NCBI RefSeq assembly: GCF_006345805.1
Contig: NW_021827558.1
Coordinates: 1-27,115, forward strand
From: Octopus sinensis
Lineage: Eukaryota
Direction: 5' to 3'
DNA: 27,115 bases
Shown: one piece after another, positions 219-27,115 of the stretch
Numbering within the stretch: position 1 is the first letter of the stretch
Layout of the letters: each line of letters opens with the position of its first letter
Position numbers and translations under genes: made by a program
The notes under the pieces: generated by a model
The model's input: the letters and a program-made list of their open reading frames with translations, nothing else
Told to the model about the DNA's origin: nothing
The model's database searches: none

Positions 219-242
219 ATTATTATTATTATTATTATTATT
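219..242 (-). repeat. (ATT)8 microsatellite = (TAA)n 3' tail of the adjacent RTE-like element
   Basis: Eight perfect ATT units about 20 bp after the stop codon (264) of the minus-strand RTE C-terminal ORF. Confidence 0.8.
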
Positions 243-1468
243 TGCAACATACGTAGAATCATATTAGTTATAATTTACTCGTGCAGCATTAAAAACAATC
301 CTTTGAACCAGCCTCCTCCAACCTTCTCTGTCGTGAGCGAGTTTCCTCAGCTCGTCCAGATCCTCACCACTCCTTAGCCTTTTCTTCACACATTTCAGGT
401 CTCCGTCAAGTGTTTCCGGCAGCGTAACACGTGGGACGTCCACGGAAGCTCGATCCCTCTTCAGGAAGTAGCCCTCCATTGCTATGTTAGCTGGGGCAAG
501 CATGCCAGTCGTAGAATATGGCCAAATAACCTCCACCGCATATTGACGATTTCCACACTCAGAGGGCCAGTTCTGCATCTATTGTATAGCGATTCCTGGT
601 TGATTCTTATAGGCCAGTTCAATCCCAGTAGGGATCTAAGTTGCCTGCGGTGAAAAGAATCGAGTCACGTTGTTCAGTACTAGACATTCCCCAGGTCGCC
701 GAATTAATGTCAGGATTGGTTTGACAAAGGCTTCATACATCCTCAGACGAAGTGACTACAGAGTCGTCGTTTGCCGATCCACTCTTTCTTTATCTTGTTC
801 ATCGTGGCCCAAGCGAGAGCCTTTCTTCTGACGATATCATGGCCGTCCCCAAGTAGAGAACCGAGTTTGTTCGTTTTGCGCCAGGCTTCACTTGAGCTGC
901 TCTCCATCCTCATGATTTCAACGATGTCGGTTTTTCCAACGTCATTTTAAGGAACCATCTGTTCAGCTCAGCAGGTGCCACTTCAAGGAGTCGAAGTAAG
1001 GCCGATTTGTCGTCTGACACGAAGTCGACGTCATCTGCATATACAATTTCGACGATATTGCCAGCATAGAATTTTCGAAGGTCTCGTAGTACCGTCTCCA
1101 GATAGATCACGAATAGCAACGGCGAGAGGGCGTCTCCCTGAGGGGTACCGACGTTGCACGTGAATTCACGGAAAACGCCGTGCCGACCCGCACCTTGAGC
1201 TTGTGTTTTCGATAGTAGTACTCTTATCATATTGACAGAGTCAGGGTCCAGGAATTGTTCCAGTATTTTGAGGAGTATACCACGGCGTACCGTGTCAAAG
1301 GCCCTAGACAGGTCTATTCCCAGGACTGTTGTTGCACTTTTGTATCTCTGGGTGATAGCGCAGTACCACTTGTGGGCCCAGACAGCATCGGCGGTGGATC
1401 TTCCTGTCCTAAATCCACTATGACTCGGGGATAGATAGTTGTCCACTTGTTCTCTTATTCGGTTCAGT
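219..1468 (-). mobile_element. 5'-truncated, frameshifted RTE-clade non-LTR retrotransposon (RT domain + C-terminus)
   Basis: Minus strand: LNRIREQVDNYLSPSHSGFRTGRST, GIDLSRAFD, GTPQGDALSPLLF, YADD. After frameshifts: RWRLFGHILRL and AHDREGWRRLV, typical RTE C-terminal motifs. Ends in a TAA tail. Confidence 0.85.
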
Positions 1469-1469
1469 T

Positions 1470-1863
1470 GATTGATGACATTAAATGTTATTTATTTTAT
1501 TTTTTAAATGTTTTTATTTATCGAATTAAATACAATAAATTATCACGCACGTTATATTATTTTCGTTTTGTGCATGTATGCAGTTAATTCTTATTTTATT
1601 TTTTCGTGCTTTTATGTTTTTATTTTATAATTTTTTTGTTTTTTTATTTGTTTGACTATTAATTAAATTGATTACTGGTAAAATATCTTGCATAAAGTAT
1701 ATTTTGCAAGTGAATTTGTATTCATTTTATCAATTAATTAATATGCATTCATACAGACATTTTTAAATTTATTTCTCTTTAGTATTCTATTGTTTATTTT
1801 GATCTTTTTATTATTCTGATCCTATTCTATTATTCTGATCCTATTCTATTATTCTGATTTTTC
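1470..1863. repeat. RepA copy 1 (subtype A1), unclassified T-rich repeat with 2.5 copies of a 19-nt unit TTATTCTGATCCTATTCTA at 1811-1858
   Basis: Aligns by eye with 14207-14564, 20555-20993 and 23263-23702, starting GACATTAAATGTTATTTATTTT. Confidence 0.9.
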
Positions 1864-2698
1864 AATACACTCAACCCTCTCAAATTGGCTATTTTTGGGC
1901 CTTTCAATTTTGTTGGCAAATTAGATGATAAAATCGATAATTTTTCAAAGAAACTACTTTAATATGTCATGGTCGGCTCATATGGGTGGGCGACACGTAT
2001 GGCCCTACCCATTACATGCTTTTACATGGAAGAGCTTTATAAAATGTCAACGGTTTTTAGAGCGGACCCGGTTTTTGGAAGGACCACAGAAAAAAATTGT
2101 ATAAATCGTTTTATTTTATCCTGAAAATAGTTATATAATAAATTAGACCATGTTTAAATAATTTCTTAAGCTGTTTCTGATTTTATCATTGCTCACAAAA
2201 CCAACATACCCTTCAAAAGTGCTTTTTAAATTTTAAATAAGTATATTTTATTTGAAAAAAAAAAAAAATTGATTCACGTTACATTTTTATACAGATTTAT
2301 CATGTTCCATTAGAAAATAATTCAAAAACAAATGTAAAATATGTGAAAACCACAATCTTTTAACTTTTTTGCTTTAGTGACTGGTATATATAAATACCAG
2401 TTCCTTTGATAAACAGTCCTTGGATGAATCATTCCATTCCAAATGAATCAAAATCTTTCTTGTCAAAGCCTTGAAATTGTTCGTTACCTACTTCTTCGAT
2501 TCTTTGACCAAATTTTGAATTTGCGCATTTTTCGTCATTTTTTATTATATAATGTGACCGGTCGAAAATGAGATACGGCTAAATACGAGCCGTTAAAAAA
2601 TCGATAGTCAATATACCGATAAAAAAAGCCAATTGACAAAATGGCAAACGGCGCGTACTAATGATTGAACCTTTAATCTTTTAAAAAATGAAGTTTTA

Positions 2699-4215
2699 CA
2701 GTACCGCTCAAATGTTTCGGACCACCCTATTTTTCTCAATTTCCAAGTCAATCCTAAATTATTTTTTATACGGTTCTTTAGAGAAACTTATTAGATAAGC
2801 TTAAACACATTTATTCTATTTTAAAAACTTGGACAGATATTCATGTTTGGGCGCAATTTTAAAATTATCGATTTTATACTCGATCATATGTTCCGGACCA
2901 GTTTAAAAAAAACCGAAAATTTATTAAACTTATAAAAAGTTAATAATTAATATTTCCTCCGTTGTTCGTTATAACAGCATTTATTCGCTCTGGAAGTGAA
3001 TTGTATAATTTTTCAATGTACGAATTATCAATCTCGTACCAAATTTTTTTGGTCAAATTCCAGAGCTCTGGAAGATCTTTTGGTTCCGATCATAAAGTTT
3101 TTGTTTTAGTACCGACCACATATTTTCAATAATATTCAGTTCGGGTGACTGGCTCGGCCAAGTTTCTAAGATTTTTATTTGTTTTACTTTGAAAAAAATT
3201 CATTGTCGACATGGACCGATGGGAAGGAGCGCCGTCTTGCTGGAGATACATGGTCTCATCATAAAAATTTTCGAGTCCAACATTTATAATTCTCTGATAC
3301 TCTGCGGAATCAACATTTTTAATGCATAAGACAATGTTTCTCCATCCATTTGCAGCAATAGCTCCCCAGACCATAATGCTAGGAGAAAATTTTCGTGTTT
3401 TTAACAATATTTTGAGTCAAATCTAGAGTTTGGTGGCCTTCTAACATAATTTTTTTGTGTTTGAATGCAAATTTATTTTGCATTCATCACTAAAAATAAT
3501 TTTACCCCCATCATTTTGGCTCCAAGTTAATTTCTCAATGCACCAATTTTTTCTAGCCTTTTATGGCATATGGAAAGACTTGGTTTTGGGCATTGCTTTC
3601 GCCATTCAAATTATTATCTTTCTTTGTAGGCATCTTTTAATTGTATTTGTGCTTACAATAGAATTTAATTTCATATCAAATTTAATTTGATTTGCCGTTT
3701 TTGTGGGGTCTGCTTTCGAAATTCTCACTAATTTGCGTTCAGATCTTGGGATAAAATCTCGGTCGACCAGATTTGGGTCTGTCGGAATATAGTCCACGGA
3801 TGAATATCTGAAATTGTTCTTTGAACAGCAGTTTTGGATATTTTTAATTTTTCGGCAATTTCTCTTTGAAGCTCCATCTTTAAAAAAAGTGATGATAGCG
3901 ACCCGATCAACCAGTGAAACACGCGGCATTTGTTATTATTAGTCTTTTGTTTTTAATTGAATCAAAAATTATTTAAATTTAAAGAGATTTAACTGGTTCG
4001 AAACATATGATTGCAACTGGTCCGGAACATATGATCGAGTCAAAAATCAATTATATTCAATGGCGCCAAACAAAATATTTAAAGAAAATTTTAGAATAGA
4101 ATAAATGTATTTAAGCTTATCTAATAAGTTTCTCTAAAGAACCGTATAAAAATAATTTAGGATTGACTTGGAAATTGAGAAAAATAGGGTGGTCCGAAAC
4201 ATTTGAGCGGTACTG
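2699..4215 (-). mobile_element. Full-length Tc1-family transposon with ~200-bp IR/DR-type TIRs, nested in Ginger-a
   Basis: TA|CAGTACCGCTCAAATGTTTCGGACC... at 2699 and its reverse complement ending 4215|TA. Inverted identity extends about 200 bp. 16-nt DR motif at 2709, 2885, 3994, 4018 and 4190. Confidence 0.92.
2940..3929 (-). pseudogene. Tc1 DD34E transposase, frameshifted
   Basis: IIFSDECK, SIMVWGAI, YLQQDGAPSH, WPSQSPELNIIENMW reconstructed across several 1-nt frameshifts. Confidence 0.9.
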
Positions 4216-4339
4216 TATATCTAAACCAAGTTTGCTTTAAATTAGTCAAATTATTCACAACATTAGCAATTATAATTTACATCATTTTAATTTTTGATAA
4301 TATACATTTCATTGATAGGCGGAAAGTATGTATAAAAAG

Positions 4340-4601: not shown

Positions 4602-5923
4602 TATTCTAGCCTCGCTAAGTCTCTGCTATTTTCTTGTATCACAGTACCATCTTCTGCCTCGAGATCAACAACATCCTGTGGCAGATACTCCTCTAAATAT
4701 TGTGAATGTATCAATGTGCTCATTTAAGGCACTTTTCCGTGTTTTTTTATTATTGTCAAGATACAACCCTCCTGACAACTCGATCGCCGATGTTAAAAAT
4801 GGAAATATCATTCTTCCAGGTTCTTTTTCCTAACATTTTTCTTTCGGCATGGTCTGAATTCGAAATTGCTTTCGTTCTCGTGGTTTCATCATTCAATGAC
4901 CAAACCATGCAAGATATTCAGTTGCTTCACTTTGTGTTTCTTTATTCCCCGAATCAATTTGGTGGAATATTTCATTCATTTCGTTTTCTGAGTAGTGATT
5001 ATTAACGGTGTCATCGGCAGAAGCTCCAAACATCAATTCGAATGGAGCGTGCAAAGTGGTCGAATGCTGGACAGAATTATACGACTTGTAATTTCTTCGA
5101 TGATATCGATCCATCTGAATTCAAATTCTTTGAAAAGCACGTAGAAGAAATCATGAACTTCAATGTCTGATTCAGACGCTCTACTTGTCCCTGCACCCAT
5201 GGACACCTAGGACGCCCTCTGACGTGTTTTATACGATATGTTGAGCATAAATCGACTTTTTTTCGTTTACGAATTTCTTGCCATTGTCTGTGTGCAAAAT
5301 GGTTGGTTTTCCAAACATCAGAATTATACTTTTTATTGCACCTGACACCTCCATGGCCGATTTAGTCTTTAGAGGTCTTGTCCAACAAAATTTAGAAAAA
5401 AATCCAACCCAACCAAAAGCCAGCAAAAATTGTCATTGGCATTTGAATAATGCCGTAGATCACTAAAAATCAAAAATATATCTTATATTAGAGTAGATAA
5501 CTACTACCTTTCTCTGACTGTATATGCTCTGATAGGTGTTATACTTGGTCGAATGTTCATAAGTCGTCTTGCAAGACATTGTGGACAAGACCTGAGAACA
5601 AGCATAACTTCATCTCTGCAAGATCCATAGACTAAATTCTTTAAAAGAGAAAGAAGTCTATCACGACCAGGATGTCCATTTTTGAGGTGAACATTTTCAA
5701 TAAATATCCTCTGCTGTTAATCCTCTTCCACAGCGAACACATGCAAAAGAATTCCACTTGTTTTGAAACAAAATAATTGATCCGGCGAGGAGTCTATTAA
5801 TCTGAATAAGGATGTAGTTCTTATAAAATTTCGCTTCTCCTTTAGCAAATTGGATTGTATATTTGATATTTCAGATAGGTTAATTTCTTGCTTTTGTAGC
5901 AGATTGAAACGGACAACCTTCAT
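4602..5923 (-). pseudogene. Ginger-a integrase-like transposase (HHCC zinc finger + DDE core + C-terminal domain), disrupted
   Basis: HLKNGHPGRD...CPQC; D-x-x-D-L motif after removing 5482-5507; HTDNG; GRPRCPWVQGQVERLNQTLK; FNIGDRVVRR. One premature TAA and several frameshifts. Confidence 0.85.
5482..5507 (-). other. Candidate 26-nt spliceosomal intron (GTAGTAGTTATCTACTCTAATATAAG), phase 2
   Basis: Removal gives GAA AG|A TAT ATT TTT GAT (E-R-Y-I-F-D), colinear with D-R-Y-I-A-D of the paralogs. Contains CTAAT near the AG. A separate 1-nt slip remains in the following T run. Confidence 0.65.
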
Positions 5924-6134: not shown

Positions 6135-6175
6135 AATTGCCATTCCATCTTATCCTCTGCTGCTAATTAAATACT
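6135..6175 (+). mobile_element. 41-nt 3'-terminal shard of a CRE-like element (NCHSILSSAAN*)
   Basis: Exact reverse complement of 12917-12957. Confidence 0.7.
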
Positions 6176-6246
6176 ATGAAAATCGAGAATAATATTAATT
6201 TTACTATAAACGTTTTTATTACAGATACAGAAGTTAATTTATGGAA

Positions 6247-6827
6247 TTAATTAAGAAAATTTAACCGGTCCGAAGTGAACCCCGCAACATAATTGACGTT
6301 GCGTTTGCCTCTCACGATAGCAACGGAGATCAACTGGAGAAGCCACCGGGTCTCACGTGTATCGTGGCTTTTTAATGTGGCTAAGCGTCCAAGCTTCTTT
6401 AGGAAGCGAAGCGATTTCCCACTTATTCCTCCAGTTGTCTCGACCACAATCGGACAGAACACGAATCGATCTCGCAGCGCTTCATATTTTCTCTCCTTCG
6501 CCCTCATCGTTTTTTTTGCGGCATACAGTCTGTCCACTGCGCTCCCGGCAATGTTGGACGGGCAGAGAGTGTCCACACAGGTTGCGTCCTAGACTAGGGG
6601 TTTCCCCTCTTCAAATGGGAAAATTGTGATCTAATCAGGACGTTTTCCATCTCCTCGGTCAAGCCCGACCGGTTCAAGTACGGCCGGGTATCCTGCAGAC
6701 TCCAGGGCTCGCTTGACAATTTCGTTGATCGCCTTGTGTCTTGGAAATCGTCCTGCACTTCTTCGACAAGAGAGATCATGGTGTCCTAACAATCGACGGT
6801 GGCCCCACAACGGCATTTGTGAGTACT
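6247..6827 (-). mobile_element. CRE-like RLE retrotransposon 3' fragment (zinc knuckle + RLE endonuclease)
   Basis: HKCRCG...GHHDLSC...[61 protein letters not shown]. Two in-frame TAG stops. Confidence 0.85.
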
Positions 6828-7624: not shown

Positions 7625-8097
7625 TTATAATAAAATTTTTTTTTTCGAAATAGAAAAGAAAATGGAACAGGAAGTCAGCTACTAGCCGCAGAGAGAATAG
7701 AGAAACTGTTCCCCCTGAGTACGGCTATTGAGACGCGCTCAAAAAGCCGATTGACCTCGCGGGGGTCGTTTCTGATCCTCCCGAGGTGACGGCCTCTCTC
7801 GGTGAGAAAACGTAGCGTGGCTGGGCCGAATGTGCCTGATGTTTCGACTGAAACAGGCACAAAGAAGAATCTGTCGGCGAGCGAGGCGTACTTGTCTTTC
7901 TTCTGGGTCTCTGCCATCCTCGCCGCTGTGCCAGCTTCGATCGCGGACGCGAGAAAGCATGTTGACGCAAAAGTGTCAGAGCATGTCGCGTCCCAGACGA
8001 TCGCTTTGCCGCACTTGAACGGGATGAGCGAGACGCCGTCCGGCCTCTTGCCATCGCCCCTGTTAAGGCCAGAGGGCTCCAGCTGGCACGTATGACC
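7625..8097 (-). mobile_element. CRE-like RLE retrotransposon 3' fragment; RLE domain in one open frame, followed by a T-rich UTR and A tract
   Basis: [42 protein letters not shown]...KYASLAD...VETSG...ERVSIAVLRGNSFSIL*. Confidence 0.88.
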
Positions 8098-8519
8098 TTT
8101 TATAATAAAATATCTGGTAAACCTAATGTAATTAGATAACCACGTTGCAACTTACAATGCTTTTGTTGTGGATTCAACAAATTTTGTTTTCTTAATAATT
8201 TTATTTGTTTGTTGTTGTGCTTTATCACTTTTATTTATCACTTTTTATTCTTGTATATTAATGTTTAATGTATGTATTAAAATCGATTAAATATATTGTT
8301 GACTTACAGAATTCCTTATAGTATTCGATATTCTGTAATATAATTGGTTTTATTTTGACAATAATTTAATCTTTTTAATGCTAACGATTTAATACTTTTT
8401 GGATATTTTCCAAAACCCTATTTTTTCGTATTTTCATGTTTATTAAGATTGTATTTTGTTGTATTTTTGGGCAAAAATAACAACTCGATATCTGAGCATT
8501 GTATATATGTCGTAAACTA

Positions 8520-8683: not shown

Positions 8684-9315
8684 CAGTGCTGGTAGAAAAA
8701 AACCGGTTTTGCAGTTAATAATATTTTTTGGCGCATAGCTATTAATTTTCTAAATGAAATTTATTTTTTTTATTTTTTATTTATTGAATGAAATGAAATG
8801 AAATAAAGAGTTTGAAGTTGATTATATGTATAACTTTTTTTACTTTTAAAAAATTTCAATAATCGGCGGAAATTTTAAAAATTTAAATTTTTGCTTGTGA
8901 ATAAAAAACCGGTTTTAAACAAAAAGAGTTAACAAAATCAACAGTTAATATGTTGTGTTGTATCCCGATTAATAAATAGCTCGTATGACCTTTTAGGCAT
9001 ACTATCAATTAACATCTGAATACTTTCACGACGCAATTCGTTCCAAATTTTTGTTAATTTGACTTCCAGATCCAGTTTATTTTTTGCAGGATCTAAAGAA
9101 TACTTCTGCTTCATCATGCTCCAAACATGTTCCATTGGGTTCATGTCTGGAGATTGCGGAGCCCAATCAAGAATTGGAACTTTATTTTCTTCAAAAAACT
9201 TGGTTGTCAATGCAGATTGATGACAGGGAAACAAATCTTGTTGGAAAGTGAACTGATTTAGTCCCATTTTTCGCGCCGAAACGAACAAATTATTCGTTAT
9301 AACTAGGGCAACCAC
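8684..9315 (-). mobile_element. Tc1 3' half with one TIR
   Basis: TA|CAGTGCTGGTAGAAAAAAACCGG terminus; AAAAAACCGGTTTT repeated at ~8696 and ~8903; FQQD...WAPQSPDMNPMEHVW...SMPKR. Confidence 0.85.
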
Positions 9316-9442
9316 AAAGTTGACCTAAAAAAAGCACAAATTGACTTCCATAAAGTCAACAAAATTGATTCAAAAAATGAAAGTTGACCAGAATGTAGAC
9401 CTAAAAAAAGTTTTTCAGGTAATTTTTATGCAATAATTTTTT

Positions 9443-9763
9443 CTAGAAACATGAATTATATAGAATCATATAATATTTGACGTTTTCAGTTTTAAAATTT
9501 CGGTCTTTGGCCAAAATTGTTTGAAAAACTGAAAACGAGCGCTCTACTGAACACGTAGTGGCCTGACACTGGAGTAGTTGAAACTTTTCCAAAGGCAAAA
9601 AAATTCCACCTCCGTTAACAATTTTTAAAATTTCATTCGTGTTCAATCTCTTTTCGATATATTCATTTATTTTACATGTATCTTCTTTGACATCGAGTTT
9701 TCTCAGAAAATTCTCAGAAACAGAAAAAATTTTAGAGCCAATTTGAAAAAAATCAATAATCAA
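9443..9763 (-). mobile_element. hAT-like transposase C-terminal (dimerisation-type) fragment
   Basis: ATTCSVERSFS...RNFKTENVKYYMILY matches the xERxFS hAT C-terminal motif. Confidence 0.65.
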
Positions 9764-10024: not shown

Positions 10025-10290
10025 ACAAATAAATTACTCGAAAGCCAGAAGAATGAAGCAGCAGGTATCGGTCAAAGAGCCATATTTGCAGTTTTTCTAG
10101 ATTCGGCAAGGGCAGATGCAGATCCAGGACGAGAAGCGGAGTCAACCAGCGATGTGAGGAAAATGAGTCTGCGCAGGTAACATCCCACACGAGTGCAATT
10201 TCTTCCCTTAACTGGAATAAAGTCTACCCAACTGGGCGTTTTCCGTCCCCACGGTCCAGTCCTACCGGTTCTAACGTTGAGGGGGATGAT
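10025..10290 (-). mobile_element. CRE-like RLE fragment, decayed
   Basis: [22 protein letters not shown]...ALVWDVTCADSFS, then SASRPGSASALAESRKT and KYGSLTD across frameshifts. Confidence 0.75.
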
Positions 10291-11163
10291 ACACCAAATG
10301 TATGTAGTGTATTACTCAGAATGTCCATTAATATTGTCAAATGTTGAATTGAAAACGTTTAATAATCAATTTAATTTTCTTATCAATTATTAATAAATCG
10401 TTTAAACTTGTATAATAAAAATGTTTCATTTAACTTAATTTACCTAATAACGGATATCTTTTTTGTTATTAAGCCACTTTACTTTTTTCTCTTCATGTAG
10501 CCGTAGATAGAATATTCTACGATTAAACGCATTATTGGGGATAATACGCCGAATAAAGTATGCAGTAGTATTACTCATAATGCTCATTAATTAGACCAGC
10601 TGTATTTTGTAAAATTGTTAGACCGTGCTAATGATTACTTTCTTTCTTTGTGTCATTTCTTGTCTGTATTACATTCTTTTATATTTCCAGCATGGATAGC
10701 ATGGTCGAGTTCTGCAGGAGAGACAAAGCCAGATTAGTGGGTGAACTGGGTACCCACAATTGGTTCTCTATAGCTCGTCAGCAAGCTAGTTTTAATTTTT
10801 AAATACACCACATCGACGAATTATATATTTTAACAAATAAATCGGAAGCATCAGCTTTGAAAATCATTTTAAATAGCTTATCTGGCAACATTGTCCTCGT
10901 ACAACTGCTAAAAGATAATCAAGTAACCTCGTTAATCAGAATGAGAATTGATGTTTTCAGTATAGCAGCACACTATCTATCTGATTTTTTTCCAAAGTTT
11001 ATTATAATGAGGAGACAATGACAAATAATTTGAAACAGTGTAATTTGAATGCAAATAACTAAAATTATAATTTTATTTTTTTTAAAATTTCAAGATTTTA
11101 TTTAATTCCTAAAATAGCGTATTATTGACGTGTAGTTTGACATTACTTTTTGTGGTTGATGTA

Positions 11164-11552
11164 TTTATATTTTTCTGTGATGAATTGTTTTTACTTGTTA
11201 TTTATGGTTTTTTTCCTTATTTCTATGTTTATTGGTTCCTTGATCCTTTAATTTTATAATTAATTATTGGTTTGAAGAATCATGTATTTTTAATCATTCT
11301 ATAAACATTATTAATAATGACTGAAGCATTTTAATTGATTTCTCACATTTTTATATTTTCTATATCTAAAAAATATTTATTTTATATTTTTCTCTGATGA
11401 ATAGTTTTTACTTGTTATTTATGGTTTTTTTCATTATTTCTATGTTATTGGTTCCTTGATCCTTTAATTTCTATAATTAATTATTGGTTTGAAGAATCAT
11501 GTATTTTTAAATAAACATTATTAATAAGACTGAACATTTTAATTGATTTCTC
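11164..11552. repeat. Imperfect tandem duplication, ~180-bp units with a 217-bp period
   Basis: 11164-11344 and 11381-11552 share TTTATATTTTTCT.TGATGAAT...GGTTCCTTGATCCTTTAATT...GGTTTGAAGAATCATGTATTTTTAA...TTAATTGATTTCTC. Confidence 0.85.
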
Positions 11553-11665
11553 CCATTGCCCCTAAGATAGAGGTATATATAATTTTTATATTTCAAACGC
11601 AAATATTTGTATTTTTAATATATAAAATATGTTTTTTCGTATTAAAAAAGAGGAATTAATTTATT

Positions 11666-11995
11666 CTATGAAAAATAATCAGTTATTTTGAATCCAGTAT
11701 TATATTTATTTCTTAGAATCTTCGACATTTTTATCTTGAATTCATAGTATTCTTTGAGTCCTTCAGGGCAAGTGTTGAATAAGGAAGTTTCAAGATCATT
11801 GATTATTCTCATTGAATCTTTTAAGTCGGACCCTTCAATTTCATCATTTCCATTATACAAAGTATCATTATCCTCAATTCCGTTTATTCAAGATCCATTA
11901 AAGCTAAAACATGCTTATCAATTAATTCAGATTCTTTTTTTGAATTAGTTTCAGGAAAACATGTTCTCTGTTCGTTTATTTTCATCCACAATTGA
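11666..11995 (-). mobile_element. pogo/Tigger transposase C-terminal fragment
   Basis: IVNC(W) motif, acidic stretch and terminal KITDYFS*, paralleling KITDYIYRN* of the neighbouring Tigger. Confidence 0.5.
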
Positions 11996-12124
11996 CAATT
12001 GTGTTGTTGTTACTCGACTTCATGCTTCTCCCCACATATGCGATTATTTTGTCACATGGGCCCGCGATACTATGGGCAGTTAATTCATTTTATTAATGAA
12101 ACCACAAAGAGTAAAATTTTGGTA

Positions 12125-14564: not shown

Positions 14565-14740
14565 TGTCACCGGCTCATTAATGGACCCGGCATATTAATG
14601 GACCGCATCAAAATGTCATTAATATCAATTACGTCCATATGAAAAGTATCTTACTTTTTTCTAAGTCCAATTTTAAACCTATTTTTGATGGTTTTAATGA
14701 CTTCTGGAAAACTAAGATCGACAACATAACAAACCTAACC

Positions 14741-15420: not shown

Positions 15421-16330
15421 TGATTAATTATTATATTGTTTATTATATTTAGAGGGTCTCCATTTTAAAATAATCAATTTTTCATTTTAAAATAGTAATA
15501 GTAAACTTTTAAAATTTGAGATATGAATATTCTAACGTAAAAAGTCAATTTCGAAAGACAATCTTACTCAAACCCTAATTGTTGCAAGTCAATTTGATAC
15601 TGTTCCCTATGCGGCCTGCGGCCGCAGTGTATTTGACTCGGATTTTATGATTAATACGATCTTTAATACTTTCTGATTACACTTTCTAGTGTTACGCGAA
15701 CTCTAAATAACAGTTTTATTAAAACTTAATTAAAAAACCCCGTATACGACACAATGCAAAACATTAAAAGTTTCAACTATTTATTTTAAAATTTTAGAAA
15801 GTCTCGAGATATTAACATTTTTGATTACATTTTTTTCCATATCTTCTAGATCATAATTATGAAATTCTTGATTAATCACTGTATACATATTTGTTTGTAG
15901 TTCATCATACAAAGGATACTTTCTGTTTGAAACATTTCCATCATAATCATGTCTAATAATCACTTTATCTCCCACGTTTATATTTTCCTCATCATATCGC
16001 CATTTTCTTTTTTTCTTCATTTTCTCGCCTGCTTTTTGAAGATTTTCCAGAATCTTCATATTCTGCTGGTCATCTTCCGAGCATTCATTTTTTTCGTAAT
16101 TTATTTCTTCTTCTGGATCAGTTCCATCGAATGCCATTAATGCATTTATTTCATTTTCGTCTGGTCTTTTTTTAATTCCCATAAAACTTCGAAAAGGAAT
16201 ATTCTTGGTCGTGTCATGTTTTGTTCGATTGTAATCATATACGATCCTCTTTATAATGTTGAAGTAAACTCCAAAACTTCCAGCTGAAGCACTTGTTGAG
16301 GATATCCACCGTTTAATTGATTGGTTGAAC

Positions 16331-16356
16331 CTTTTTATTATAGCTTTAAAATAAAC
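16331..16356 (-). other. Candidate 26-nt intron (GTTTATTTTAAAGCTATAATAAAAAG), phase 2
   Basis: Removal converts VERFILKL* into VE-R|FNQSIKRWISST, colinear with VERLNQTLKFMISST in Ginger-a, and opens the frame through to the stop at 15781. Confidence 0.8.
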
Positions 16357-16761
16357 CTTTCAACTTGTCCTTGTACCCAAGGTGCTCTAGGTCTTCCACA
16401 GATATGCTTTATTTTAAAAAATTCACACAGCTTATCCATTTCAGAATTGCGAAACTCCCTTCCGTTATCAGTTTGGAGAATGACGGGTTCTCCAATAACG
16501 TAAAAAATATTCTCAAGTAGAGATGAAATTTCCAATGCACTTTTATTCTTTGCTAATTTTACAACAGCATACTTAGTAAACGAATCAATGACCACTAGTA
16601 AACGAACCTTCATATAAATAATTATTTAAGTTTCCCCACGAGTTTGATCGATTTATTTCTAAATATCTTCTGAGATCTATAAGATCTGCGATATAACGGT
16701 CTCTAGGACCTCTGGCAATGATTGGAGTGATAGGTGGCTTGGTTGCCATCAATTTTTTGGA

Positions 16762-16787
16762 CTAGCTAATAAATAAATAGCCAATAC
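16762..16787 (-). other. Candidate 26-nt intron (GTATTGGCTATTTATTTATTAGCTAG), phase 0
   Basis: Removal gives CVYCQ|SKKLMATKPPITP, with the same spacing as CPQCLARRLMNIRPSITP in Ginger-a. Confidence 0.8.
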
Positions 16788-16907
16788 TTGACAGTAAACA
16801 CATTTGTCTAAAACAAAGCGGATATCTTCTCTCATTATGTTATAGAAAGTATTCCTCCACATACTACTAAGTCTATCTCGGCCAAAATGGTTTTTATTAT
16901 GCTCAGA

Positions 16908-16930
16908 CTTCAATAAAGCAGATAAACTAC
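16908..16930 (-). other. Candidate 23-nt intron (GTAGTTTATCTGCTTTATTGAAG), phase 0
   Basis: Removal gives KIIE|SEHNKNH, matching FIENVHLKNGH of Ginger-a. Without splicing, the upstream frame has stops. Confidence 0.72.
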
Positions 16931-16969: not shown

Positions 16970-18337
16970 CCTCCCGAACTGCACCCCACTCCCTGGTTCC
17001 CCTGAACCCTCTAAACAGACAACTAGTGCTAGTGCTCATCAATTGGTTGTCAACTCATTCCTCATCAAACTGTCCAGCTTCCGAAGTTCTTTGAAAATCA
17101 CCCTTCGCATTCTAAAGTCAGCAAGGATACAAGTTTCCAAATGTCTTATTTCCTTTATAAACGATACGCTCGCGTCCAACAGTTGGGAGGCATGGTCTTG
17201 TCTAATCTGTTTTGCCCCACTGGCGCTCGGAAACTTCATCCGCACTGGGAAAAATCCACCTTCTCTAGCAGAATTGATTAAAGAGAACAACAACAGAATT
17301 TTTTCGCACTCAATAACAACTTTGCCCGATGTTGATCGCAAGCAATCCCCAAATAAGAAAAAGAAAACCCCACAGTGCCTTGAGGACACACTGAATGATC
17401 TTGTTCGTGCCAAACGAGCCGAGGGTGACGTCCGGGCTGCCATATGCACAGTCTCAAACGACGGCACAGTGTTAAAACCAACTCCTGAGATCCAAACACC
17501 CGAATCCTCTTCCTGATCTGCGGCCTCTGTGTCTTGCACGCTCAACCCATCAAAAGATGAAATCAAGTTCTCAATTCAATCTTTTGGCAAATGTACTTGC
17601 GGCGGACTTGATGGCCTCCGCCCGGGCCACATCAGTGACCTCACCTCTCCCTCAATTGGCGAGGCAGGCAACTCTCTGATATCCGCTATAGCCGCCTTAG
17701 TCGGTAAGATACTAAACGGGGATATCCCCTACTATGCGAGGAACATTCTCCTCTCAGCACATCTACTTGCATTCCAGAAGAAGGATGGCGGAATCCGTCC
17801 CATAACAGTCAGAAATTACTTCCGCCGCCTGATTGCTAAATTGGCCTCGAGGATCGTATGTCCCCGCTTAAGTACCAAATTTGCTCATCTTTGGTAACGA
17901 AATCGTCCACTTCCAGACAGGAGTTCAGCAGGGAGACCCGCTTGGGCCCCTCCTCTTTGAACTTGCAATCGATGATGCAGTGCACTCTGTTGAATCTCCG
18001 TTCAATCTATGGTACTTGGATGATGCCTCGGTTTGTGGATCTATCGAGGATATATTCAACGATCTTCCACATCTAATCCCTACCATCAAACACCTTGGGC
18101 TTGAAGTAAATGAAGAAAAATGTGAGCTCATGAATGGTAACTACCCGCTGGCAAATTTTCTCGACTCAAAAAAGCCCACAACCGATCTCATCTCAGGCAA
18201 TCAGACTATCAGCATGTCAGAGGCTGCATTCCTTGACTGCCCTCTAAGCCCATCTGGCCTAAGGGTCCATCTGGCCAAGAAGGACATGGAAGTCTGTAAT
18301 CTCACAAGCAGACTCTTGGAGCTAGACTCGCACATTG
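16970..18337 (+). mobile_element. CRE-like retrotransposon N-terminal + RT fragment with an internal deletion
   Basis: RAKRAEGDVRAA, GGLDGLRPGHI, KKDGGIRPITV..YFRRL, GVQQGDPLGPLLF, WYLDD, GLEVNEEKCEL. Stop at 17516 and a deletion at ~17880. Confidence 0.88.
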
Positions 18338-18829
18338 ATGTGACCCCAAAGGGGAGATCCTGAAAGGTTTTATTTATCACAGCGAAAATAATCTGAATGA
18401 ATTCTTTGGTAATAAAATTATTTAAAATTGGCCAAACACTGGAAAGTATTTAACCAATAAAAATACGGGGAAATATTTATGTATTGTTTTGCTCGAATGA
18501 CATTTTCAAGAAAAATGTAATAAGGACTGTCTTGTGGAGGACTCTTTTTATTATCCGATAGCTATAGTAAATTGTATTCTTGCTCTGCGATTATCTATTG
18601 GTAATCATTTTATTCTTAAATAAGGAAACCGAGTTTGAAGTATCCTGCGCTAATTGGTTGAGCTCATTTTGGGCATGTTTTGAGACGGTTCCTAAACCCA
18701 CTTATCTTAGGTACTGCATTAATTCTGCTTCTTTGGATTTTGTGAAAGAAGACAAATAATTACATTTCTGTCTAATTAGTTTTCTAACATTAAAAAATTG
18801 ATTTCTTTTTATAAAATGAATCTCGAATT

Positions 18830-19550: not shown

Positions 19551-20530
19551 ATTATTATTTAACCCCTGGAACACAGAAAAGAGGAATAGTAATTGTCTAA
19601 TTAAGTGATCCCGGTGTCAGTGCGTCTCCTTTTATCTTTTCCTTATCTCGAATTCTTAATCAATGTCCAAAGGGTAAGGTTTTTTTTCATTTTCTAACAC
19701 AATTCTTATAGGCAAGATACTCCTCTTCAAGGGGACCTCCGGTAGATCTTTCCATTGTTAAGAAGATGTGCTGTCATAAATAACGTCCCACATGATTGTT
19801 TGGGCAATGGATGGGGCAGCTAGAGTTATATCAGGTGACGTTCGGGAGTCACCATTTCTGGAAGTTCTTGTATGTTTGTTCCGGTCGTTCAGAATTAACA
19901 AGTTGTCAATCTGTCCAATATTATAGATCCTCTTTGGTCCAATCGTTGGTTTTTATACCATAGGAGGCTTTTTGCATTCAAATCCCCGCAAATTAATATT
20001 TTTTTCAATTTTGTAAAATCTTCAAGTTTAGGACGATATCCTCTATAACATGAAGACGCAGGAGGTATATATATCGTCATCCGGAAGGATCTTAAACTTA
20101 TTTTCACTGTGATTTGTTCTAAGGATCATCCATGTCCATAATGGCCGATATCTTGTTTGATAGGTCCATAACATTAATCTGATTGCGGATAAAGATTAGG
20201 AGGCCTCTACCTTTTCCAAGTTTTCGGTCTTTACGGAATATCCAGGGAAAGTTGGGGTTAAATCTTTCTGTGTAAGTTTTGACTCCTGAATTAAAGCAAT
20301 ATCCACTGAGTTGGACTGAAGAAATCGTCTAAGTCTCATAATCTTTGTTCGAATTCAATTGAGTTGACTTGGACATTAATCAAAGCTGTTTCTGAAATTG
20401 GTTTGACAACGCCAGAGATAAGTAGAAATGCACGACACCATCCACGTCTCCATGAAGAAGGGATAGGGAGTTTGCGGCTCTTTTTCACATTTATTGTGGA
20501 ATGCCACCACGTCGTAGGTGAGGCACGCCA
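19551..20530 (-). mobile_element. APE-type LINE remnant: AP-endonuclease domain, internal deletion, TAA-type tail
   Basis: IRTKIMRLRRFLQSNSVDIALIQESKL, RKDRKLGKGRGLLIFIR, YIPP, ICGDLNA, ILND...TSPDITL across frameshifts. 3' end GGGGTTAAATAATAAT. Confidence 0.8.
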
Positions 20531-20554
20531 CATATCTTATAGTGTTCTGAATTT

Positions 20555-20993
20555 ACGTTCCGATCAGAATTAAAACAGAATTTGACATTAAATGTTATTT
20601 ATTTTATTTTTAAATGTTTTTAATTTATGAATTAACTACGATAAATTATTACGCACGTTATATTATTTTCTTTTGTTGTGCGTGTATGCAGTTAATTCTT
20701 ATTTTATTTTTTCGTGCTTTTATGTTTTAATTTTATAATTTTTTGTTTTTTTATTTGTTTGACTATTAATTAAATTGATTGCTGGTAAAATATCTTGCAT
20801 AAAGTATATTTTGCAAGTGAATTTGTATTCATTTTATCAATTAATTAATATGCATTTATACAGACTTTTTTAAATTTATTTCTTTCTAACATTTTATTGT
20901 TTATTCTGATTTTTTTATAATATTCTGATCTTTTCTACTATTCTGATTTTTTCTAATATTTTGATCTTCTATTATTTTTAATTAATTAAACTT
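20555..20993. repeat. RepA copy 3 (subtype A2)
   Basis: Near-identical to 23263-23702 from ACGTTCCGATCAG to TAATTAATTAAACTT. Confidence 0.92.
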
Positions 20994-21389: not shown

Positions 21390-21429
21390 ATTGTTTCAAA
21401 ATATAATCGAATATAGTATTAAATGTATT

Positions 21430-21750
21430 TGGTGTAAGATCGTCATAATTACAGCGGGAAGCAAGGAAATGGGCCTGTATCCCCCGGGGACATCATGAGG
21501 CATTCTGGGTTTTCCGATAAGGATTACCTCAGCCACTTTCCATATAGAGGGGATCGTCCCAAGTCGCAAGCTCCCGCTAAACAGGACCTGTAAGGCGGTG
21601 ATCAACAACGGAGGGGCCTTCTTAAAAATAGCCATAGGGATCCGGTCCAGACTCGCCGCAGTGTTTTTATTTTGGGAGATCGCTGCCAGAATCTCCGCTT
21701 CGGAAATATCGCCTGCATCGTTCCTTCATATGCCCAGCTGGCAGCGCTTG
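21430..21750 (-). mobile_element. APE-type LINE RT N-terminal fragment
   Basis: ISEAEILAAISQNKNTAASLDRIP...GTIPSIWKVAEVILIGKP..YRPISLL. Confidence 0.8.
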
Positions 21751-21779
21751 TCCCACGACAATATCTGCTGGACAGTATC

Positions 21780-22200
21780 AAAGGACGATGTCTCCGCGAA
21801 CTGGCTTCCGTCAGTTCCAAAGCGTAGACGGGAAAGAGGAATAGTTTTGCCCACGAAAGGGCGTCGGAGTGTTTTTTCGTGGCATTTCCAATCAAGGTGG
21901 CAAGACTCTCTGCAGCAAGTAACCTGACTTCCTTTGGAATCCTGACGGGGATGTACCTGTACCGTCGCAAAGCGGACAGATATCGCAGAAAATCCTCTGC
22001 ATCAGAGACGGGAAGGGCAAAGGGAGGTGGACACCATCCAGGAACTACGCACGAAGGGCAATTCCACGTCTGGAGGGCAGATGCCTGCTTCCCCTTGAGA
22101 CCAATACAAGAGAGATGGAAAAAATTCTCACAGGTCGAGCAATTAATTCCACGTTTTCCTCTTCGATTTCTTGCAAGAAAGGCATGTGGGATTATCTACT
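21780..22200 (-). mobile_element. Second PHD-finger CRE-like 5' fragment (PHD 22049-22184; not in ORF track)
   Basis: CLSC...(1-nt shift)...INCSTCENFFHLSCIGL...TWNCPSC, in frame with FLRYLSALRRYRYIPVRIPKEVRLLAAESLATLI. Confidence 0.78.
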
Positions 22201-22353: not shown

Positions 22354-22445
22354 GGCGAGCAATAGAGGTTTCTTTAGAAATTCTCAATTTTTTTGGAAAA
22401 AAGTGGCGAGCAATAGAGATGGCGACCAATAGAGGTTTGACCGTA
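22354..22445. mobile_element. Single terminus of a second pogo/Tigger family with three subterminal repeats
   Basis: GGCGA(G/C)CAATAGAG at 22354, 22405 and 22421, ending GGTTTGACCG|TA; same layout as the Tigger end at 13929-14037. Confidence 0.7.
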
Positions 22446-22447
22446 TG

Positions 22448-22635
22448 CTAATAATCAGGAATTTCAATCTTTTAATTCCAAATATCTCCATAAGTTAATG
22501 AGATCGGCTATGTATCTATCACGCAGGCCTCTCGCAATGATTGCGTAATATGAGTTTTTGGTGTCATCAATCTCTTTGACTAATCGTCTTATTTTTATTA
22601 TTATACCTCACTAGAAAACATAATTTTACTAAGAT
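22448..22635 (-). mobile_element. Ginger-c transposase fragment (not in ORF track), close to Ginger-b
   Basis: SKRLMTPKTHIT(P)IIARGLRDRYIADLINLWRYLELKD*NS*LLA. Cut at the TA of the pogo terminus. Confidence 0.75.
22580..22606 (-). other. Candidate 27-nt intron (GTATAATAATAAAAATAAGACGATTAG) at the same position as 16762-16787
   Basis: Followed directly by TCA AAG AGA TTG ATG (SKRLM). The preceding TGTTTTCTAGTGAG reads C-F-L-C-E if one lost T is allowed. Confidence 0.65.
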
Positions 22636-22656
22636 GTCAATTCTATTTTAAATTAT

Positions 22657-23200
22657 CTAATTAAAAATCCAAATCTTCAGTGATTTCTTTTCTTCGCTTG
22701 GAAGAAGAGTTTTCCGTAAACTTCCTTTCATTTCTATTTCTGCGTCAATGATTTTATTCAACTGAGTGTCCTCACGACATGCCAGCTCCGCAAGTTGATT
22801 GGCGGCACAGGCGTACTCCTCGCTGTCTACCTTCATCCCATGTCTGTACTCGATAAGCATACTCTCTGGCGTCCTCTTAACCACAACCGACTGGATTTAT
22901 GTCCTCGTTTCTTCTTCAATGGATAACTTGTCCACATGACTTTTAAAGAACTTTGAGACAACTCCGTCTTATGTTAAGACAATTAAAATAATCTTCACTT
23001 TTGCTTCATTGAAAACCGACAGTTTGTTTGCAAACAAGTCATATTTGTGAAATTTCTCCATTTCAACTTGCTTTAAACGGTCTTGCGAGGTAATTCTCAC
23101 TTCGATTAAATCAATTTCCTTTTTCCTAGACAAAAACAGTTTTTAAAAACATTTTCAATCTCATTTCGAGTGAAACCGTAAATTTTTTCTGACAGCTGAT
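22657..23200 (-). mobile_element. R4/NeSL-like RLE C-terminal fragment with internal deletions
   Basis: KNLRFHS; EIDLIEVRITSQDRLKQVEMEKFHKYDLFANKL...LT*DGVV...IQSVVVKRTPES. Confidence 0.8.
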
Positions 23201-23262
23201 TTTTCACATTTATCGTGAAACGCCACCACGTCGTAGGTTATTATTATTATTTAAGCCATGCG

Positions 23263-23702
23263 ACGTTCCGATCAGAATTAAAACAGAATTTGACATTAAA
23301 TGTTATTTATTTTATTTTTAAATGTTTTTAATTTATGAATTAACTACGATAAATTATTACGCACGTTATATTATTTTCTTTTGTTGTGCGTGTATGCAGT
23401 TAATTCTTATTTTATTTTTTCGTGCTTTTATGTTTTAATTTTATAATTTTTGTTTTTTTATTTGTTTGACTATTATTAAATTGATTGCTGGTAAAATATC
23501 TTGCATAAAGTATATTTTGCAAGTGAATTTGTATTCATTTTATCAATTAATTAATATGCATTTATATAGACTTTTTTAAATTTATTTCTTTCTAACATTT
23601 TATTCTTTATTCTGATTTTTTATAATATTCTGATCTTTTCTACTATTCTGATTTTTTCTAATATTTTGATCTTTTTCTAGTCTTTTTTAATTAATTAAAC
23701 TT
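23263..23702. repeat. RepA copy 4 (subtype A2)
   Basis: Near-identical to copy 3. Confidence 0.92.
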
Positions 23703-23941: not shown

Positions 23942-24393
23942 TTAAATTACTTCAGAATTTGAGCATTTATTCAAATACGTTAACATCTTTCTGTAGAAGG
24001 ATCCGCAATGTTCACTTGTTATTTCGTTGAATTTAGATGTAATTAGGCATCTAAGATCTTTTTCATTCTTGGCTTTACGACGGACTACCAAGTTTTCCAT
24101 ACTGAAAAAACATTTGGTGGCAAAAATTTCCTGATTATAGTTGATACTTCAGTATCATTTTCCAGTCCACGGTAGTGATGAATCCTCGCATTATCCATAA
24201 TAAAAATAGGATTAGTAATATCTTTCGATAAACATAATGCTTTTATTTCTAGTAAAACGGTTTTGAAATCTTCTGCGTTAACTGCCTTATCATGAATTTT
24301 ATGGAATAACATCCCATATTTATTCATTGCAGCTACCACCGATGTGTTTCGACTGCGGGATGCCGAAACTGATAAATATACAGTGCACGACAA
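23942..24393 (-). mobile_element. IS630/Tc1-like (DDE_3) transposase fragment
   Basis: SRNTSVVAAM, IFIMDNARIHH, FLPP|NVFSVWK, then (frameshift) NLVVRRKAKNEKDL...HCGSFYRKML..*. Confidence 0.8.
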
Positions 24394-24579: not shown

Positions 24580-24990
24580 TCAATTGAGAAGCCCGCTGCT
24601 GATGGAAAGCGAGTTCCCTCGGAGTATGGCTATTCCGACCTTTGTCTTAGCCATACACCTTCACGGGATCATTTTTCTTTGTGGCGAGCTTCTTCCGAGT
24701 TCGCGCAAGAACTCGGCAGTCGCTGGGCCAAAGCTCTGATGACTCAGCCGCAACAGGTGAATCTGTAGCGGTCCCCGAGGAAGGAATATTTTTGGTTTTA
24801 AGGTTTTCCGCGATTGAGGCAGCTGCTCCAGTGTCTGAACCGATTTAAGGAGATTCGTGCTTGAGTAAGTATCGACGCAAGTTGCGTCCAGACCAAAGAT
24901 CGTCCGGAGTTAAAGGGAAAAGAGTCATCCCGTCAGGTCTCTTTCCATCACCTCGATCGAGACCCATGGTTCAAGCTGTGCTGGGAATTT
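24580..24990 (-). mobile_element. CRE-like RLE 3' fragment, frameshifted
   Basis: [24 protein letters not shown]...WDATCVDTYS...IAILRGNSLSISSGLLN*. Confidence 0.82.
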
Positions 24991-25039
24991 TTTTTTATTA
25001 TAAAATTTTTTTTTGTCAAAAATTGTTAATCAATTATTT

Positions 25040-26480
25040 TAGAATGACCTCAGGATAGCGTGTGAATTTCCGCGGACAATTGCACGCGAAATCCTCTGGA
25101 AGAGCCACGACGTCTCCCGCGGATCACCTGTTTTTTTTGGTGATTAGACCACCCAATCTTCGAATGAACGAAAAACTCTCTGATCCAAAGACTCCGGAAG
25201 TCTCCACAGCGATCTGCTGGAAAAGATATCTGTCTGCCAGGAAAGAGTATTTCTTTTTCTTCAACTCTTCAAACGTTTTGCAGCAGAGCCAGGAAAGGAT
25301 GCCCAACTTCCGAATGAAGAAGGTCCAAACGTGTCAGGGCAGGTAAAATCCCAAACAAGTGCTTTCCCTCTCGTGTACGGGTAGATGGTTACGCCGTCTG
25401 GGCGTTTGCCATCTCCTCTATCGAGACCAGCTGGTTCGAGTTGAGAGTGGAATCCGGCAGCGTCCATGGCCCTTTTGATGATGTCATTGCGGCGGAATGT
25501 CGGGGAAACGACCGGCGCTACGAGTGCAAGAAAGTGGGTGCCTTCCCAATGGACCAATCCTCTTTCCACATTTGCAGGGGTGTGGGGGTGCACATCGGTA
25601 AGCCGAGACGTAGACATAGGCCGATCCTAATGGTATCGTTGTCCAGTTTACAGCCGGTAGACGCAATAGGACAAGCGCTTATCCAGGAGCCAGAATTGGG
25701 TTGTGCACCCGATCTGAGACATATGATCCGTTCTTGGTCCATGCACAGTTCGATAACTTTGTAAGTCTCCTCTGCACCAGATTTCGTCCCAATGTCTCTG
25801 TGAAGATTCCACTTCGGGAATCTCAGACCATGACTGCTCCAAGACTCGAGCCGTTTTGCATCCACCGACACGGGGTACATTCATTTAAAGACTTGAGAAT
25901 GACGCCGATGAGGGGACCACAAAATGATCGTGAGGCCAAATAGGCTGGAAGAGCCAAGTCGGTAGGTGAACGGAGACCGATACCTCCAATACGAATAGGT
26001 AGGGAAGCTTGTTTCCATGCGAGATCATCAAGTTGCACATTACAAATAAGTTCGGCATGACGACGAATGATAGAGTCTATTGACCCAAGATGTTTAGGAT
26101 GAAGGAAACATGGAGATGAACGGAGGATATACAGAATTTTTGGAATGGATAAAAAATTCTTCAAGAGGAACAAGCCTTCATGTGCATCTAGCTGGGATAA
26201 CCGACTCGCTGCTTGTTCCATATTTGATGTCTTTTCCATCAAAATTTTTTCTGTTGCCTGACCGTGGAGAGGAGAGCCGAGAATAATAAGGTCTTCCTTT
26301 TGGGTTATTCTGATTTCAGGAATGAGTGAGGTAAAGTTTCTGTGGATTTCATCGAAAGAGGCCACGTAAAGATTAGTCAGCTCACACTTTGACGGATTCA
26401 AGGATAACCCGATGTGGCCGAGCCGAGAGGATATCATAAGGGCGTCTTTGAAGGCTGGAATCTGCTTTAGACGGTGCTCA
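25040..26480 (-). mobile_element. CRE-like retrotransposon 3' third (end of RT, thumb, zinc knuckle, RLE), frameshifted
   Basis: IGLSLNPSKCEL, ILGSPL, QASLPIRIGGIGLR, RLGLP, PCKCG..GRHPLSC, KRPDG..WDFTCPDT, VETSG, WLFQRISRAIVRGNSHAIL*. Confidence 0.9.
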
Positions 26481-26664
26481 CTCTTCATTAAGAAATGAAC
26501 GACAAAATAACGAAAAAACAAAAATTCTTATTAGTGATTTTACAATCAGTTTTATTTGAAGTGAAAACAGAATCGGAAAGAAGATTTGAAGCAGTAATTT
26601 GTACATTAAATTTAAAGCATAAATAATTAAGAGGTGCGACAAAAGAAACCGACAGACAAAAATA

Positions 26665-27115
26665 ATAATAATAAGTATCTAGAATTGCCTCCTTTGGCAT
26701 TATACACTGCGTAGCTTCTATCCTTCATTGGTAAAATTAGTTTTTGTATGAACTCTATCGGGATTGATCTCCAAATTTGGATAATTTCCTCTTTTAGGTC
26801 ATTGTGACATGTTGGGGTTTTTTCATCTATTTTTCTTTTCATATATGCCCAGACGTGCTCAATGGGATTGAGATCAGGTGACTGGGCCGGCCATGAAAGA
26901 ACTTTGATTTGATTTTCGTTGAAATATTCCGTCACAATTTTTGCTTTGTGGCAGGGAGCATTGTCCTGTTGGAATGTGAAATCCGTTAAATTCATTTTTG
27001 CTGCAGATTCTATCAGGTTATTCGTCAACAAATTCACATATCGTCCACTGTTTAACGTACCATCAAAAAAAACTAAATTCCCCCACTCCGTTGTATGAGA
27101 TGCATCCCAAACCAT
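26665..27115 (-). mobile_element. Tc1 DD34E transposase C-terminal part (continues beyond the window)
   Basis: FQQDNAPCH...WPAQSPDLNPIEHVW...KGGNSRY in one open frame. Confidence 0.88.

Follow-up and report, generated by a model that had tools for sequence, protein, structure and literature searches.

The DNA analyzed here is a window of 27,115 nucleotides (nt) from Octopus sinensis (NCBI RefSeq assembly GCF_006345805.1, contig NW_021827558.1, positions 1 to 27,115 of the forward strand), and by the window we mean this whole stretch. It is a transposon graveyard on a chromosome of the Octopus sinensis/vulgaris group, in which fragments of at least 10 families or lineages of both transposon classes lie interleaved and co-oriented, nearly all of them with their coding sense on the minus strand. 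This polarity is real and unusual, and it makes the window a tentative candidate for a unistrand source, or "trap," of PIWI-interacting RNAs (piRNAs).

The window was translated in six frames, and the stop-free segments of at least 35 amino acids on both strands (207 plus and 186 minus, about 11.7 thousand residues per strand) were scanned against Pfam at E values of 0.01 or less. Further pieces were added by tblastn with homologues derived from the window and from databases. Together these searches gave the following transposon pieces, which include fragments of long interspersed nuclear elements (LINEs) with or without reverse transcriptase (RT) and of several cut-and-paste elements, some of them with broken open reading frames (ORFs).

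250-1464, minus: 5'-truncated non-long-terminal-repeat retrotransposon with RT and a C-terminal ORF (RVT_1 at 847-1464, E = 4e-27)
2692-4222, minus: complete Tc1-like element with a broken ORF (DDE_3, E = 4.9e-10, and HTH_Tnp_Tc3_2; Pfam domains at 3086-3737)
4683-5908, minus: Ginger-type (stand-alone integrase) fragment a (rve and Integrase_H2C2 at 5209-5710; tblastn with RT-less rve proteins)
6135-6176, plus: 42-nt shard that perfectly repeats, in inverted orientation, the ORF end of LINE fragment d (12916-12957; self-comparison)
6280-6813, minus: LINE 3' fragment a with CCHC and "GDGKRPDG" domain (tblastn; domain at 6304-6693)
7678-8151, minus: LINE 3' fragment b with "GDGKRPDG" domain in an intact stretch of 158 amino acids (tblastn)
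8950-9336, minus: Tc1-like fragment b (DDE_3 at 9094-9231; tblastn with 121 database Tc1 proteins)
9443-9763, minus: hAT C-terminal dimerization-domain fragment, weak (Dimer_Tnp_hAT, E = 0.018, which misses the Pfam cutoff)
10056-10346, minus: LINE 3' fragment c (tblastn; domain at 10056-10274)
12916-13029, minus: LINE 3' fragment d, last 35 codons (tblastn; domain at 12925-13029)
13046-13573, minus: pogo/Tc5 transposase fragment (HTH_Tnp_Tc5, E = 1.2e-11; DDE_1, E = 1e-10; domains at 13055-13573)
14780-15114, minus: PHD-finger N-terminal piece of a PHD-RT LINE (PHD at 14977-15114, E = 1.3e-6; tblastn)
15784-16925, minus: Ginger-type element b, a near-full and young transposase (rve, E = 1.3e-10, and H2C2, at 16380-16916)
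17043-18363, plus: LINE N-terminal region and RT, three ORFs split by frameshifts, the one sizeable plus piece (RVT_1, E = 3.2e-8; tblastn)
19764-20077, minus: LINE apurinic/apyrimidinic (AP) endonuclease fragment (Exo_endo_phos_2, E = 4e-7)
21400-22195, minus: LINE PHD N terminus and start of RT (PHD at 22049-22162, E = 2e-5; tblastn)
22383-22577, minus: Ginger-type fragment c (tblastn; 60% to Ginger b)
23945-24366, minus: IS630/Tc1-superfamily DDE_3 transposase fragment (DDE_3, E = 8.6e-8 and 5.9e-9; domain at 24142-24366)
24592-24985, minus: LINE 3' fragment e (tblastn; domain at 24592-24964)
25033-26521, minus: LINE 3' half f, post-RT region and C-terminal domain, ORF of 232 amino acids (tblastn; domain at 25051-25497)
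26630-27115, minus: Tc1-like fragment d, whose ORF continues past the window end (DDE_3 at 26807-27073, E = 1.9e-13)

The minus strand yielded 16 Pfam domain matches in 11 blocks (RVT_1, DDE_3 four times, HTH_Tnp_Tc3_2, HTH_Tnp_Tc5 with DDE_1, rve with Integrase_H2C2 twice, PHD twice, and Exo_endo_phos_2), while the sole transposon match on the plus strand was RVT_1 at 17908-18135, accompanied by a weak SelR match that belongs to a host-gene relic. The pieces added by tblastn lie on the minus strand only, namely, six C-terminal LINE domains of the "GDGKRPDG" type and the third Ginger fragment (22383-22577), and the matches of database LINE, Tc1, and Ginger homologues are all minus except for the plus LINE block. 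The tally is thus 19 minus pieces versus 2 plus pieces, the latter being the LINE block and the shard (two-sided binomial p = 2.2e-4, or 4e-5 without the shard), and by length 12.2 kb are in minus sense and 1.4 kb in plus sense. When adjacent pieces that are possibly single elements are conservatively merged, the ratio is 15:1 (p = 5e-4). The bias extends to both ends of the window, which makes the polarized domain at least 27 kb long.

Retroelements divide 10:2 in favor of the minus strand and DNA transposons 9:0, the nine pieces being three Tc1, one IS630-like DDE_3, one pogo, three Ginger, and the weak hAT fragment (p = 0.004; the robust calls alone give 7:0, p = 0.016). Since the co-orientation of retroelements has a neutral component, as discussed below, the signal rests mainly on these cut-and-paste elements, for which we know of no orientation preference. 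A preliminary description of this DNA had counted 26 minus and 3 plus pieces (p about 1.5e-5), had included cut-and-paste elements in the bias, and had mentioned a 41-nt plus shard and four co-oriented copies of a repeat, RepA. We could reproduce its p value, and our strand-neutral recount remains strongly skewed; all nine cut-and-paste pieces obey the bias, the shard is present and measures 42 nt, and the RepA copies are all direct repeats.

The insertions are separate, of different lineages, and largely independent of each other and are not copies of one block. This follows from the low amino acid identity within each superfamily, which is 27 to 45% for Tc1, 40 to 60% for Ginger, 43 to 46% for the PHD pieces, and 30 to 43% among the LINE C-terminal domains (60% over one stretch of 35 residues), and from self-BLASTN, which found no large or segmental duplication within the window. 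Apart from the four RepA copies, the terminal repeats of one Tc1 element, and the shard, the repeats from that comparison are just a tandem duplication of 217 bp and two short matches (30 and 55 nt). As a control, we used 50 kb of other O. sinensis DNA, a small sample made up of two loci (L002 and L003) around two transposon-derived gene models. Both loci carry similar elements in mixed orientation (about 4:4 in L002 and 1:3 in L003), indicating that co-orientation is not the rule locally.

Several of the LINE pieces (21400-22195, 14780-15114, 25033-26521, and others) appear to belong to a lineage with an N-terminal PHD finger, RT, and a C-terminal CCHC motif followed by the "GDGKRPDG" domain, and the order of PHD before RT is also found at positions 1362-3933 of a further locus, L001, and 8898-11945 of L003. 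The six copies of the "GDGKRPDG" domain are all on the minus strand. The domain is absent from Pfam, phmmer gave no match to it in PDB, and its AlphaFold model has a mean predicted local distance difference test score (pLDDT) of 44, too poor for a fold search. From a CCHC...RH...E...RPD...D-T...K pattern, a likeness of motif only, we presume that it resembles the restriction-enzyme-like endonuclease of R2/R4/HERO-type elements. The LINE at 250-1464 adjoins at its 3' end an (ATT)8 run on the plus strand (219-246), which is an (AAT)n tail in the sense of the element; tails of this type are known from microsatellite-tailed or microsatellite-targeting LINEs, and the other LINE pieces in the window lack one. 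The 42-nt shard holds the final codons of a LINE ORF inside the 3' flank of another LINE fragment and is 100% identical to its source although its neighbors are old; microconversion, twin priming, or a tiny insertion are candidate origins.

Among the DNA transposons, the complete Tc1-like element at 2692-4222 has inverted terminal repeats of about 210 bp (2697-2903 and 4015-4217) that are 90% identical. Ginger b matches VCDQ01009226.1, a different O. sinensis locus, over 731 nt (15844-16574) without gaps at 98.9% identity, the 153 nt after this match are 94% identical to the same contig, and a second O. sinensis contig matches a further 201 nt with 85% identity. By these matches, the window belongs to O. 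sinensis or a very close relative. The near-identical copy of Ginger b suggests that a Ginger family has been active in Octopus recently (compare L003, 14960-16203). The relatives of Ginger b are stand-alone rve proteins of 340 to 470 residues, with or without H2C2, one of which is annotated in the microsporidian Dictyocoela muelleri. A Ginger fragment also occurs in the O. sinensis protein P0174, annotated as "craniofacial development protein 2-like" (L002, 10001-19228), whose RefSeq model is a chimera of a LINE AP endonuclease and 42 amino acids of Ginger that are 79% identical to Ginger b of the window, so that transposon-derived exons are present in the octopus annotation.

The window has a G+C content of 35% and an observed/expected CpG ratio of 1.04, and a signature of repeat-induced point mutation or methylation decay is not seen in it by that ratio. 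ARAGORN found no tRNA genes in the window, and no Rfam family reached its gathering threshold. The closest database proteins are distant (50% identity for the LINE piece, up to 59% for Tc1, and up to 39% for Ginger), the top database relative of LINE piece f (25033-26521) being O. sinensis LOC115228448 at 50%; such low identities fit transposon fragments that genome annotations skip. Three ORFs of the window had no exact protein match on record. The region from 10350 to 12900 has no assignable transposon polarity. Within it, 11164-11557 is a local tandem duplication with a unit of about 217 bp and 92% identity, and the unannotated stretch in which it lies is the most AT-rich of the window (22% G+C).

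Two further kinds of features accompany the transposon pieces, four copies of the RepA repeat and one relic of a host gene.

1470-1862, no coding polarity: RepA copy 1 (97% identical to copy 2)
14196-14565, no coding polarity: RepA copy 2 (self-comparison)
20481-20993, no coding polarity: RepA copy 3, full unit of about 510 nt (self-comparison)
23200-23702, no coding polarity: RepA copy 4, full unit (self-comparison)
18613-18758, plus: terminal pseudo-exon of methionine-R-sulfoxide reductase B (MsrB), a host relic (SelR, E = 1.5e-3; phmmer against PDB, E = 7e-8 to MsrB/MSRB3 C termini)

RepA is AT-rich, about 400 to 510 nt long, and built of tandem subrepeats of 18 to 19 nt (TATTCTGAT...). Two subfamilies can be distinguished, one made up of copies 1 and 2 (97% identity) and the other of copies 3 and 4 (92% identity). 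RepA is locally enriched, as the 27 kb of the window have four copies, all co-oriented, and the 50 kb of other octopus DNA have none. Copies 1, 3, and 4 exit rightward through a tandem-repeat tail, the left ends form two classes, and both ends of copy 3 coincide exactly with those of copy 4. No target-site duplications were seen around the copies, RepA is not recognizable by Rfam or ARAGORN (no match in either) as a short interspersed nuclear element (SINE) derived from tRNA or 7SL, and a conserved RepA 25-mer had no match among JGI metagenome contigs. A retroposon tail, a miniature inverted-repeat transposable element, or a cluster-specific module are candidates for what RepA is.

The MsrB pseudo-exon is the sole host-gene relic in the window and lies on the plus strand, the one predicted to be transcribed. 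It covers the last 45 codons or so and reads "...EFEVSCAN," then after a frameshift "AHFGHV," and after another frameshift "ETVPKPTYLRYCINSASLDFVKEDK" up to the stop, with two or more frameshifts in all. Directly upstream stand a pyrimidine tract and an AG, so the pseudo-exon looks genomic rather than like a retrocopy. The window contains no further MsrB exons, and our six-frame Pfam scan found no intact host exon on either strand.

Transposon orientation is known to follow long transcription units in two well-documented settings: sense copies are selected against inside genes (PMC3088655), and unistrand piRNA clusters such as Drosophila flamenco favor antisense captures (PMC10643416). Either process would imply plus-strand transcription here. 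To our knowledge, no further process co-orients many families of both transposon classes. We weighed the possible readings roughly, with priors that assign 0.1 to 0.5% of the genome to such clusters, about 40% to introns, and the remainder to intergenic DNA, and the reading of the window as a unistrand piRNA source came out as one to which we would give somewhat less than an even chance. According to this reading, the window would lie inside a long plus-strand RNA polymerase II transcription unit that is active now, or was formerly, in germline or gonadal cells. Insertions in sense to the transcript would be lost and antisense ones retained, such that the plus-strand transcript would carry antisense copies of at least 10 families (Tc1, IS630-like, pogo, Ginger, hAT, and several LINE lineages), which the PIWI machinery could then turn into antisense piRNAs. 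We infer plus-strand transcription, piRNA production, and selection at this locus from the arrangement of its sequence. Points in support are the size of the bias, its reach into DNA transposons, the independence of the insertions, the mixed orientations at the control loci, the plus-strand position of the MsrB relic, and the fact that old fragments and the young Ginger b both obey the polarity. In Drosophila, strand bias alone predicts unistrand clusters well, with a true-positive rate of 0.80 and a false-positive rate of 0.011 (FlaHMM, PMC11400887). The preliminary description had named Piwi in the host as a point to check. Piwil1 and Piwil2 have been reported in O. bimaculoides (PMC6128900), and piRNAs have been reported to be abundant in the soma and gonad of mollusks, octopus included (PMC12479628), so both are documented for octopus.

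Among known systems, flamenco and flam-like clusters are dense mosaics of fragments from many families, mostly antisense to the inferred transcription, with a bias that is readable from sequence (PMC10643416; PMC11400887). The likeness of the window to such a trap is one of architecture only. In flam-like clusters, however, the bias is carried solely by Gypsy/endogenous retrovirus (ERV) long terminal repeat (LTR) elements (PMC10643416), whereas in the window it is carried by Tc1, pogo, Ginger, hAT, and LINEs. Moreover, flam clusters span 200 to 1,000 kb compared to the 27 kb visible here, and the host is a cephalopod. The core piRNA clusters of mosquitoes, whose transcription reads through from upstream genes (bioRxiv 10.1101/2022.08.22.504762), offer a second parallel, as they are one-strand antisense traps in or downstream of a host unit, and the window has a plus-strand MsrB relic within its array. 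The mosquito clusters differ in that they were defined by small-RNA and chromatin data and are enriched in viral fragments, while no viral fragments were seen in the window and its MsrB relic is broken and lies in the middle of the array.

Several points weigh against a piRNA source. The Gypsy/ERV elements that carry the bias in flam-like clusters (PMC10643416) are absent, since the six-frame Pfam scan found no LTR-type RT, RNase H, protease, or gag domain on either strand and the rve matches belong with RT-less Ginger-type proteins, not with LTR elements. The hexamer AATAAA occurs 33 times on the plus strand versus 96 times on the minus strand (31 versus 67 without RepA), and we considered this asymmetry as a sign of selection on a plus-strand transcript. 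In Markov simulations, however, the plus strand is at expectation (33 observed, 30 to 37 expected) and only the minus strand is enriched, so that the asymmetry merely restates the orientation of the transposons, and we rejected it as such a sign. The co-orientation of retroelements has a known neutral explanation (PMC2836564), assignable polarity covers only about half of the window, and about 1e5 windows of this size fit into a genome of 2.7 Gb, among which 4 to 80 equally biased ones are expected under null or neutral models. In addition, the RepA copies may be plus-oriented retroposons; their polarity is uncertain, as copy 1 ends before the point at which copies 3 and 4 both stop, and the tail is missing from copy 2. 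Of the uni-strand trap or small-RNA cluster proposed in the preliminary description, the structural hallmark stands, with many fragmentary and co-oriented families of both classes in a host that has PIWI proteins, while the Gypsy/ERV signature of such clusters is missing and AATAAA is neutral.

The multiple-testing argument and the plus-strand AATAAA count, which bears no sign of selection, also speak for a neutral origin, which we regard as possible though fairly unlikely. Here, target-primed reverse transcription would favor the orientation of A-rich resident retroelements, the DNA transposons would agree by chance, and the window would be a tail case of a 2.7-Gb genome. In human intergenic DNA, LINE/SINE insertions nested in other such elements outnumber in sense those in antisense by about 2.2 to 1 (PMC2836564), a local co-orientation of retroelements without selection that resembles what we see. 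With p = 0.69, the probability of at least 10 of 11 retroelements agreeing is 0.10, and the plus strand is indeed T-rich, with an AT skew of -0.09 outside the coding pieces. However, the nested-insertion effect is about 2-fold, concerns AP-endonuclease retroelements only, and does not cover cut-and-paste elements, all nine of which point in the same direction (p = 0.002 to 0.004) by no mechanism that we know of. The argument from T-rich targets requires an AP endonuclease, whereas most LINE pieces here carry the C-terminal domain that is restriction-enzyme-like by its motif only. Furthermore, the joint probability is below 1e-3 for a window that was not picked for its polarity, and the control loci are mixed.

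It appears unlikely that the window is an ordinary long intron or the read-through tail of a plus-strand gene or long noncoding RNA, from which purifying selection removes sense insertions because of their polyadenylation and splice signals and in which the antisense survivors would have no small-RNA role. Octopus introns are very long, and the MsrB terminal pseudo-exon with its upstream pyrimidine tract and AG lies on the appropriate strand. In mammals, the intronic bias is modest, about 60 to 80% antisense for LINE and LTR elements with little in DNA transposons, whereas the bias here is at least 90% and DNA transposons are 9:0. The antisense bias of LINE and LTR elements within genes is well documented, by an orientation analysis that left out DNA transposons (PMC3088655), and it shares with our window that transposons oppose the transcription unit through removal of sense copies. 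The documented bias is moderate, in contrast to the roughly 90% found here together with all nine DNA-transposon pieces, and no enclosing gene was identified for the window. The MsrB exon is also broken and without a companion, no intact host exon accompanies it, and the bias goes on for 8 kb past it.

The preliminary description had also drawn an analogy to telomeric arrays, which our results do not support. HeT-A/TART, Cnl1, and R2/Dong-type arrays are likewise co-oriented head to tail, and one element of the window ends in (AAT)n, but such arrays are built from one to three families and occupy a chromosome end or a defined target, whereas at least 10 families, half of them DNA transposons, are found here, with no (TTAGGG)n telomere repeats in the window. 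Site-specific LINE insertion was likewise rejected as the cause of the polarity, as the sequences 3' of the LINE pieces are unrelated to one another and share no common target or junction. Finally, an artefact, in which local duplication or misassembly multiplied a few co-oriented pieces or polarity was miscalled, is very improbable, for although RepA is present in four direct copies and annotations cover only about half of the window, self-BLASTN is free of large duplications, pieces of the same family are merely 27 to 60% identical as protein, the Pfam scan handled both strands alike, and the gap-free 98.9% match over 731 nt to an independent assembly speaks for good base-level quality.

Orientation-selected unistrand traps are best documented in Drosophila, where they concern Gypsy-family ERVs only, and related antisense traps are found in mosquitoes. 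We found no characterized piRNA cluster of an octopus or other cephalopod in the literature searched. About half of the octopus genome consists of repeats, and transposon activity in the octopus brain is debated. Should small RNAs confirm the unistrand piRNA source, the window would be a locus of a known kind with an unusual cargo. Taking this one step further, it is conceivable, though we hold it with still less confidence, that the window is part of a flamenco-like master locus of cephalopods, in which a long plus-strand precursor, possibly supplied by read-through from a decayed gene of the MsrB type, would give rise to antisense piRNAs against Tc1, pogo, Ginger, hAT, and LINEs and not against ERVs. 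If this is true, orientation-selected unistrand traps evolved outside the arthropods and for noninfectious classes of transposons. If no piRNAs arise here, the window would be a warning that striking local polarity can occur without function at the scale of a 2.7-Gb genome, and if one-strand piRNAs do arise, it would provide an entry point to transposon control in octopus and an instance of antisense capture selected on cut-and-paste elements.

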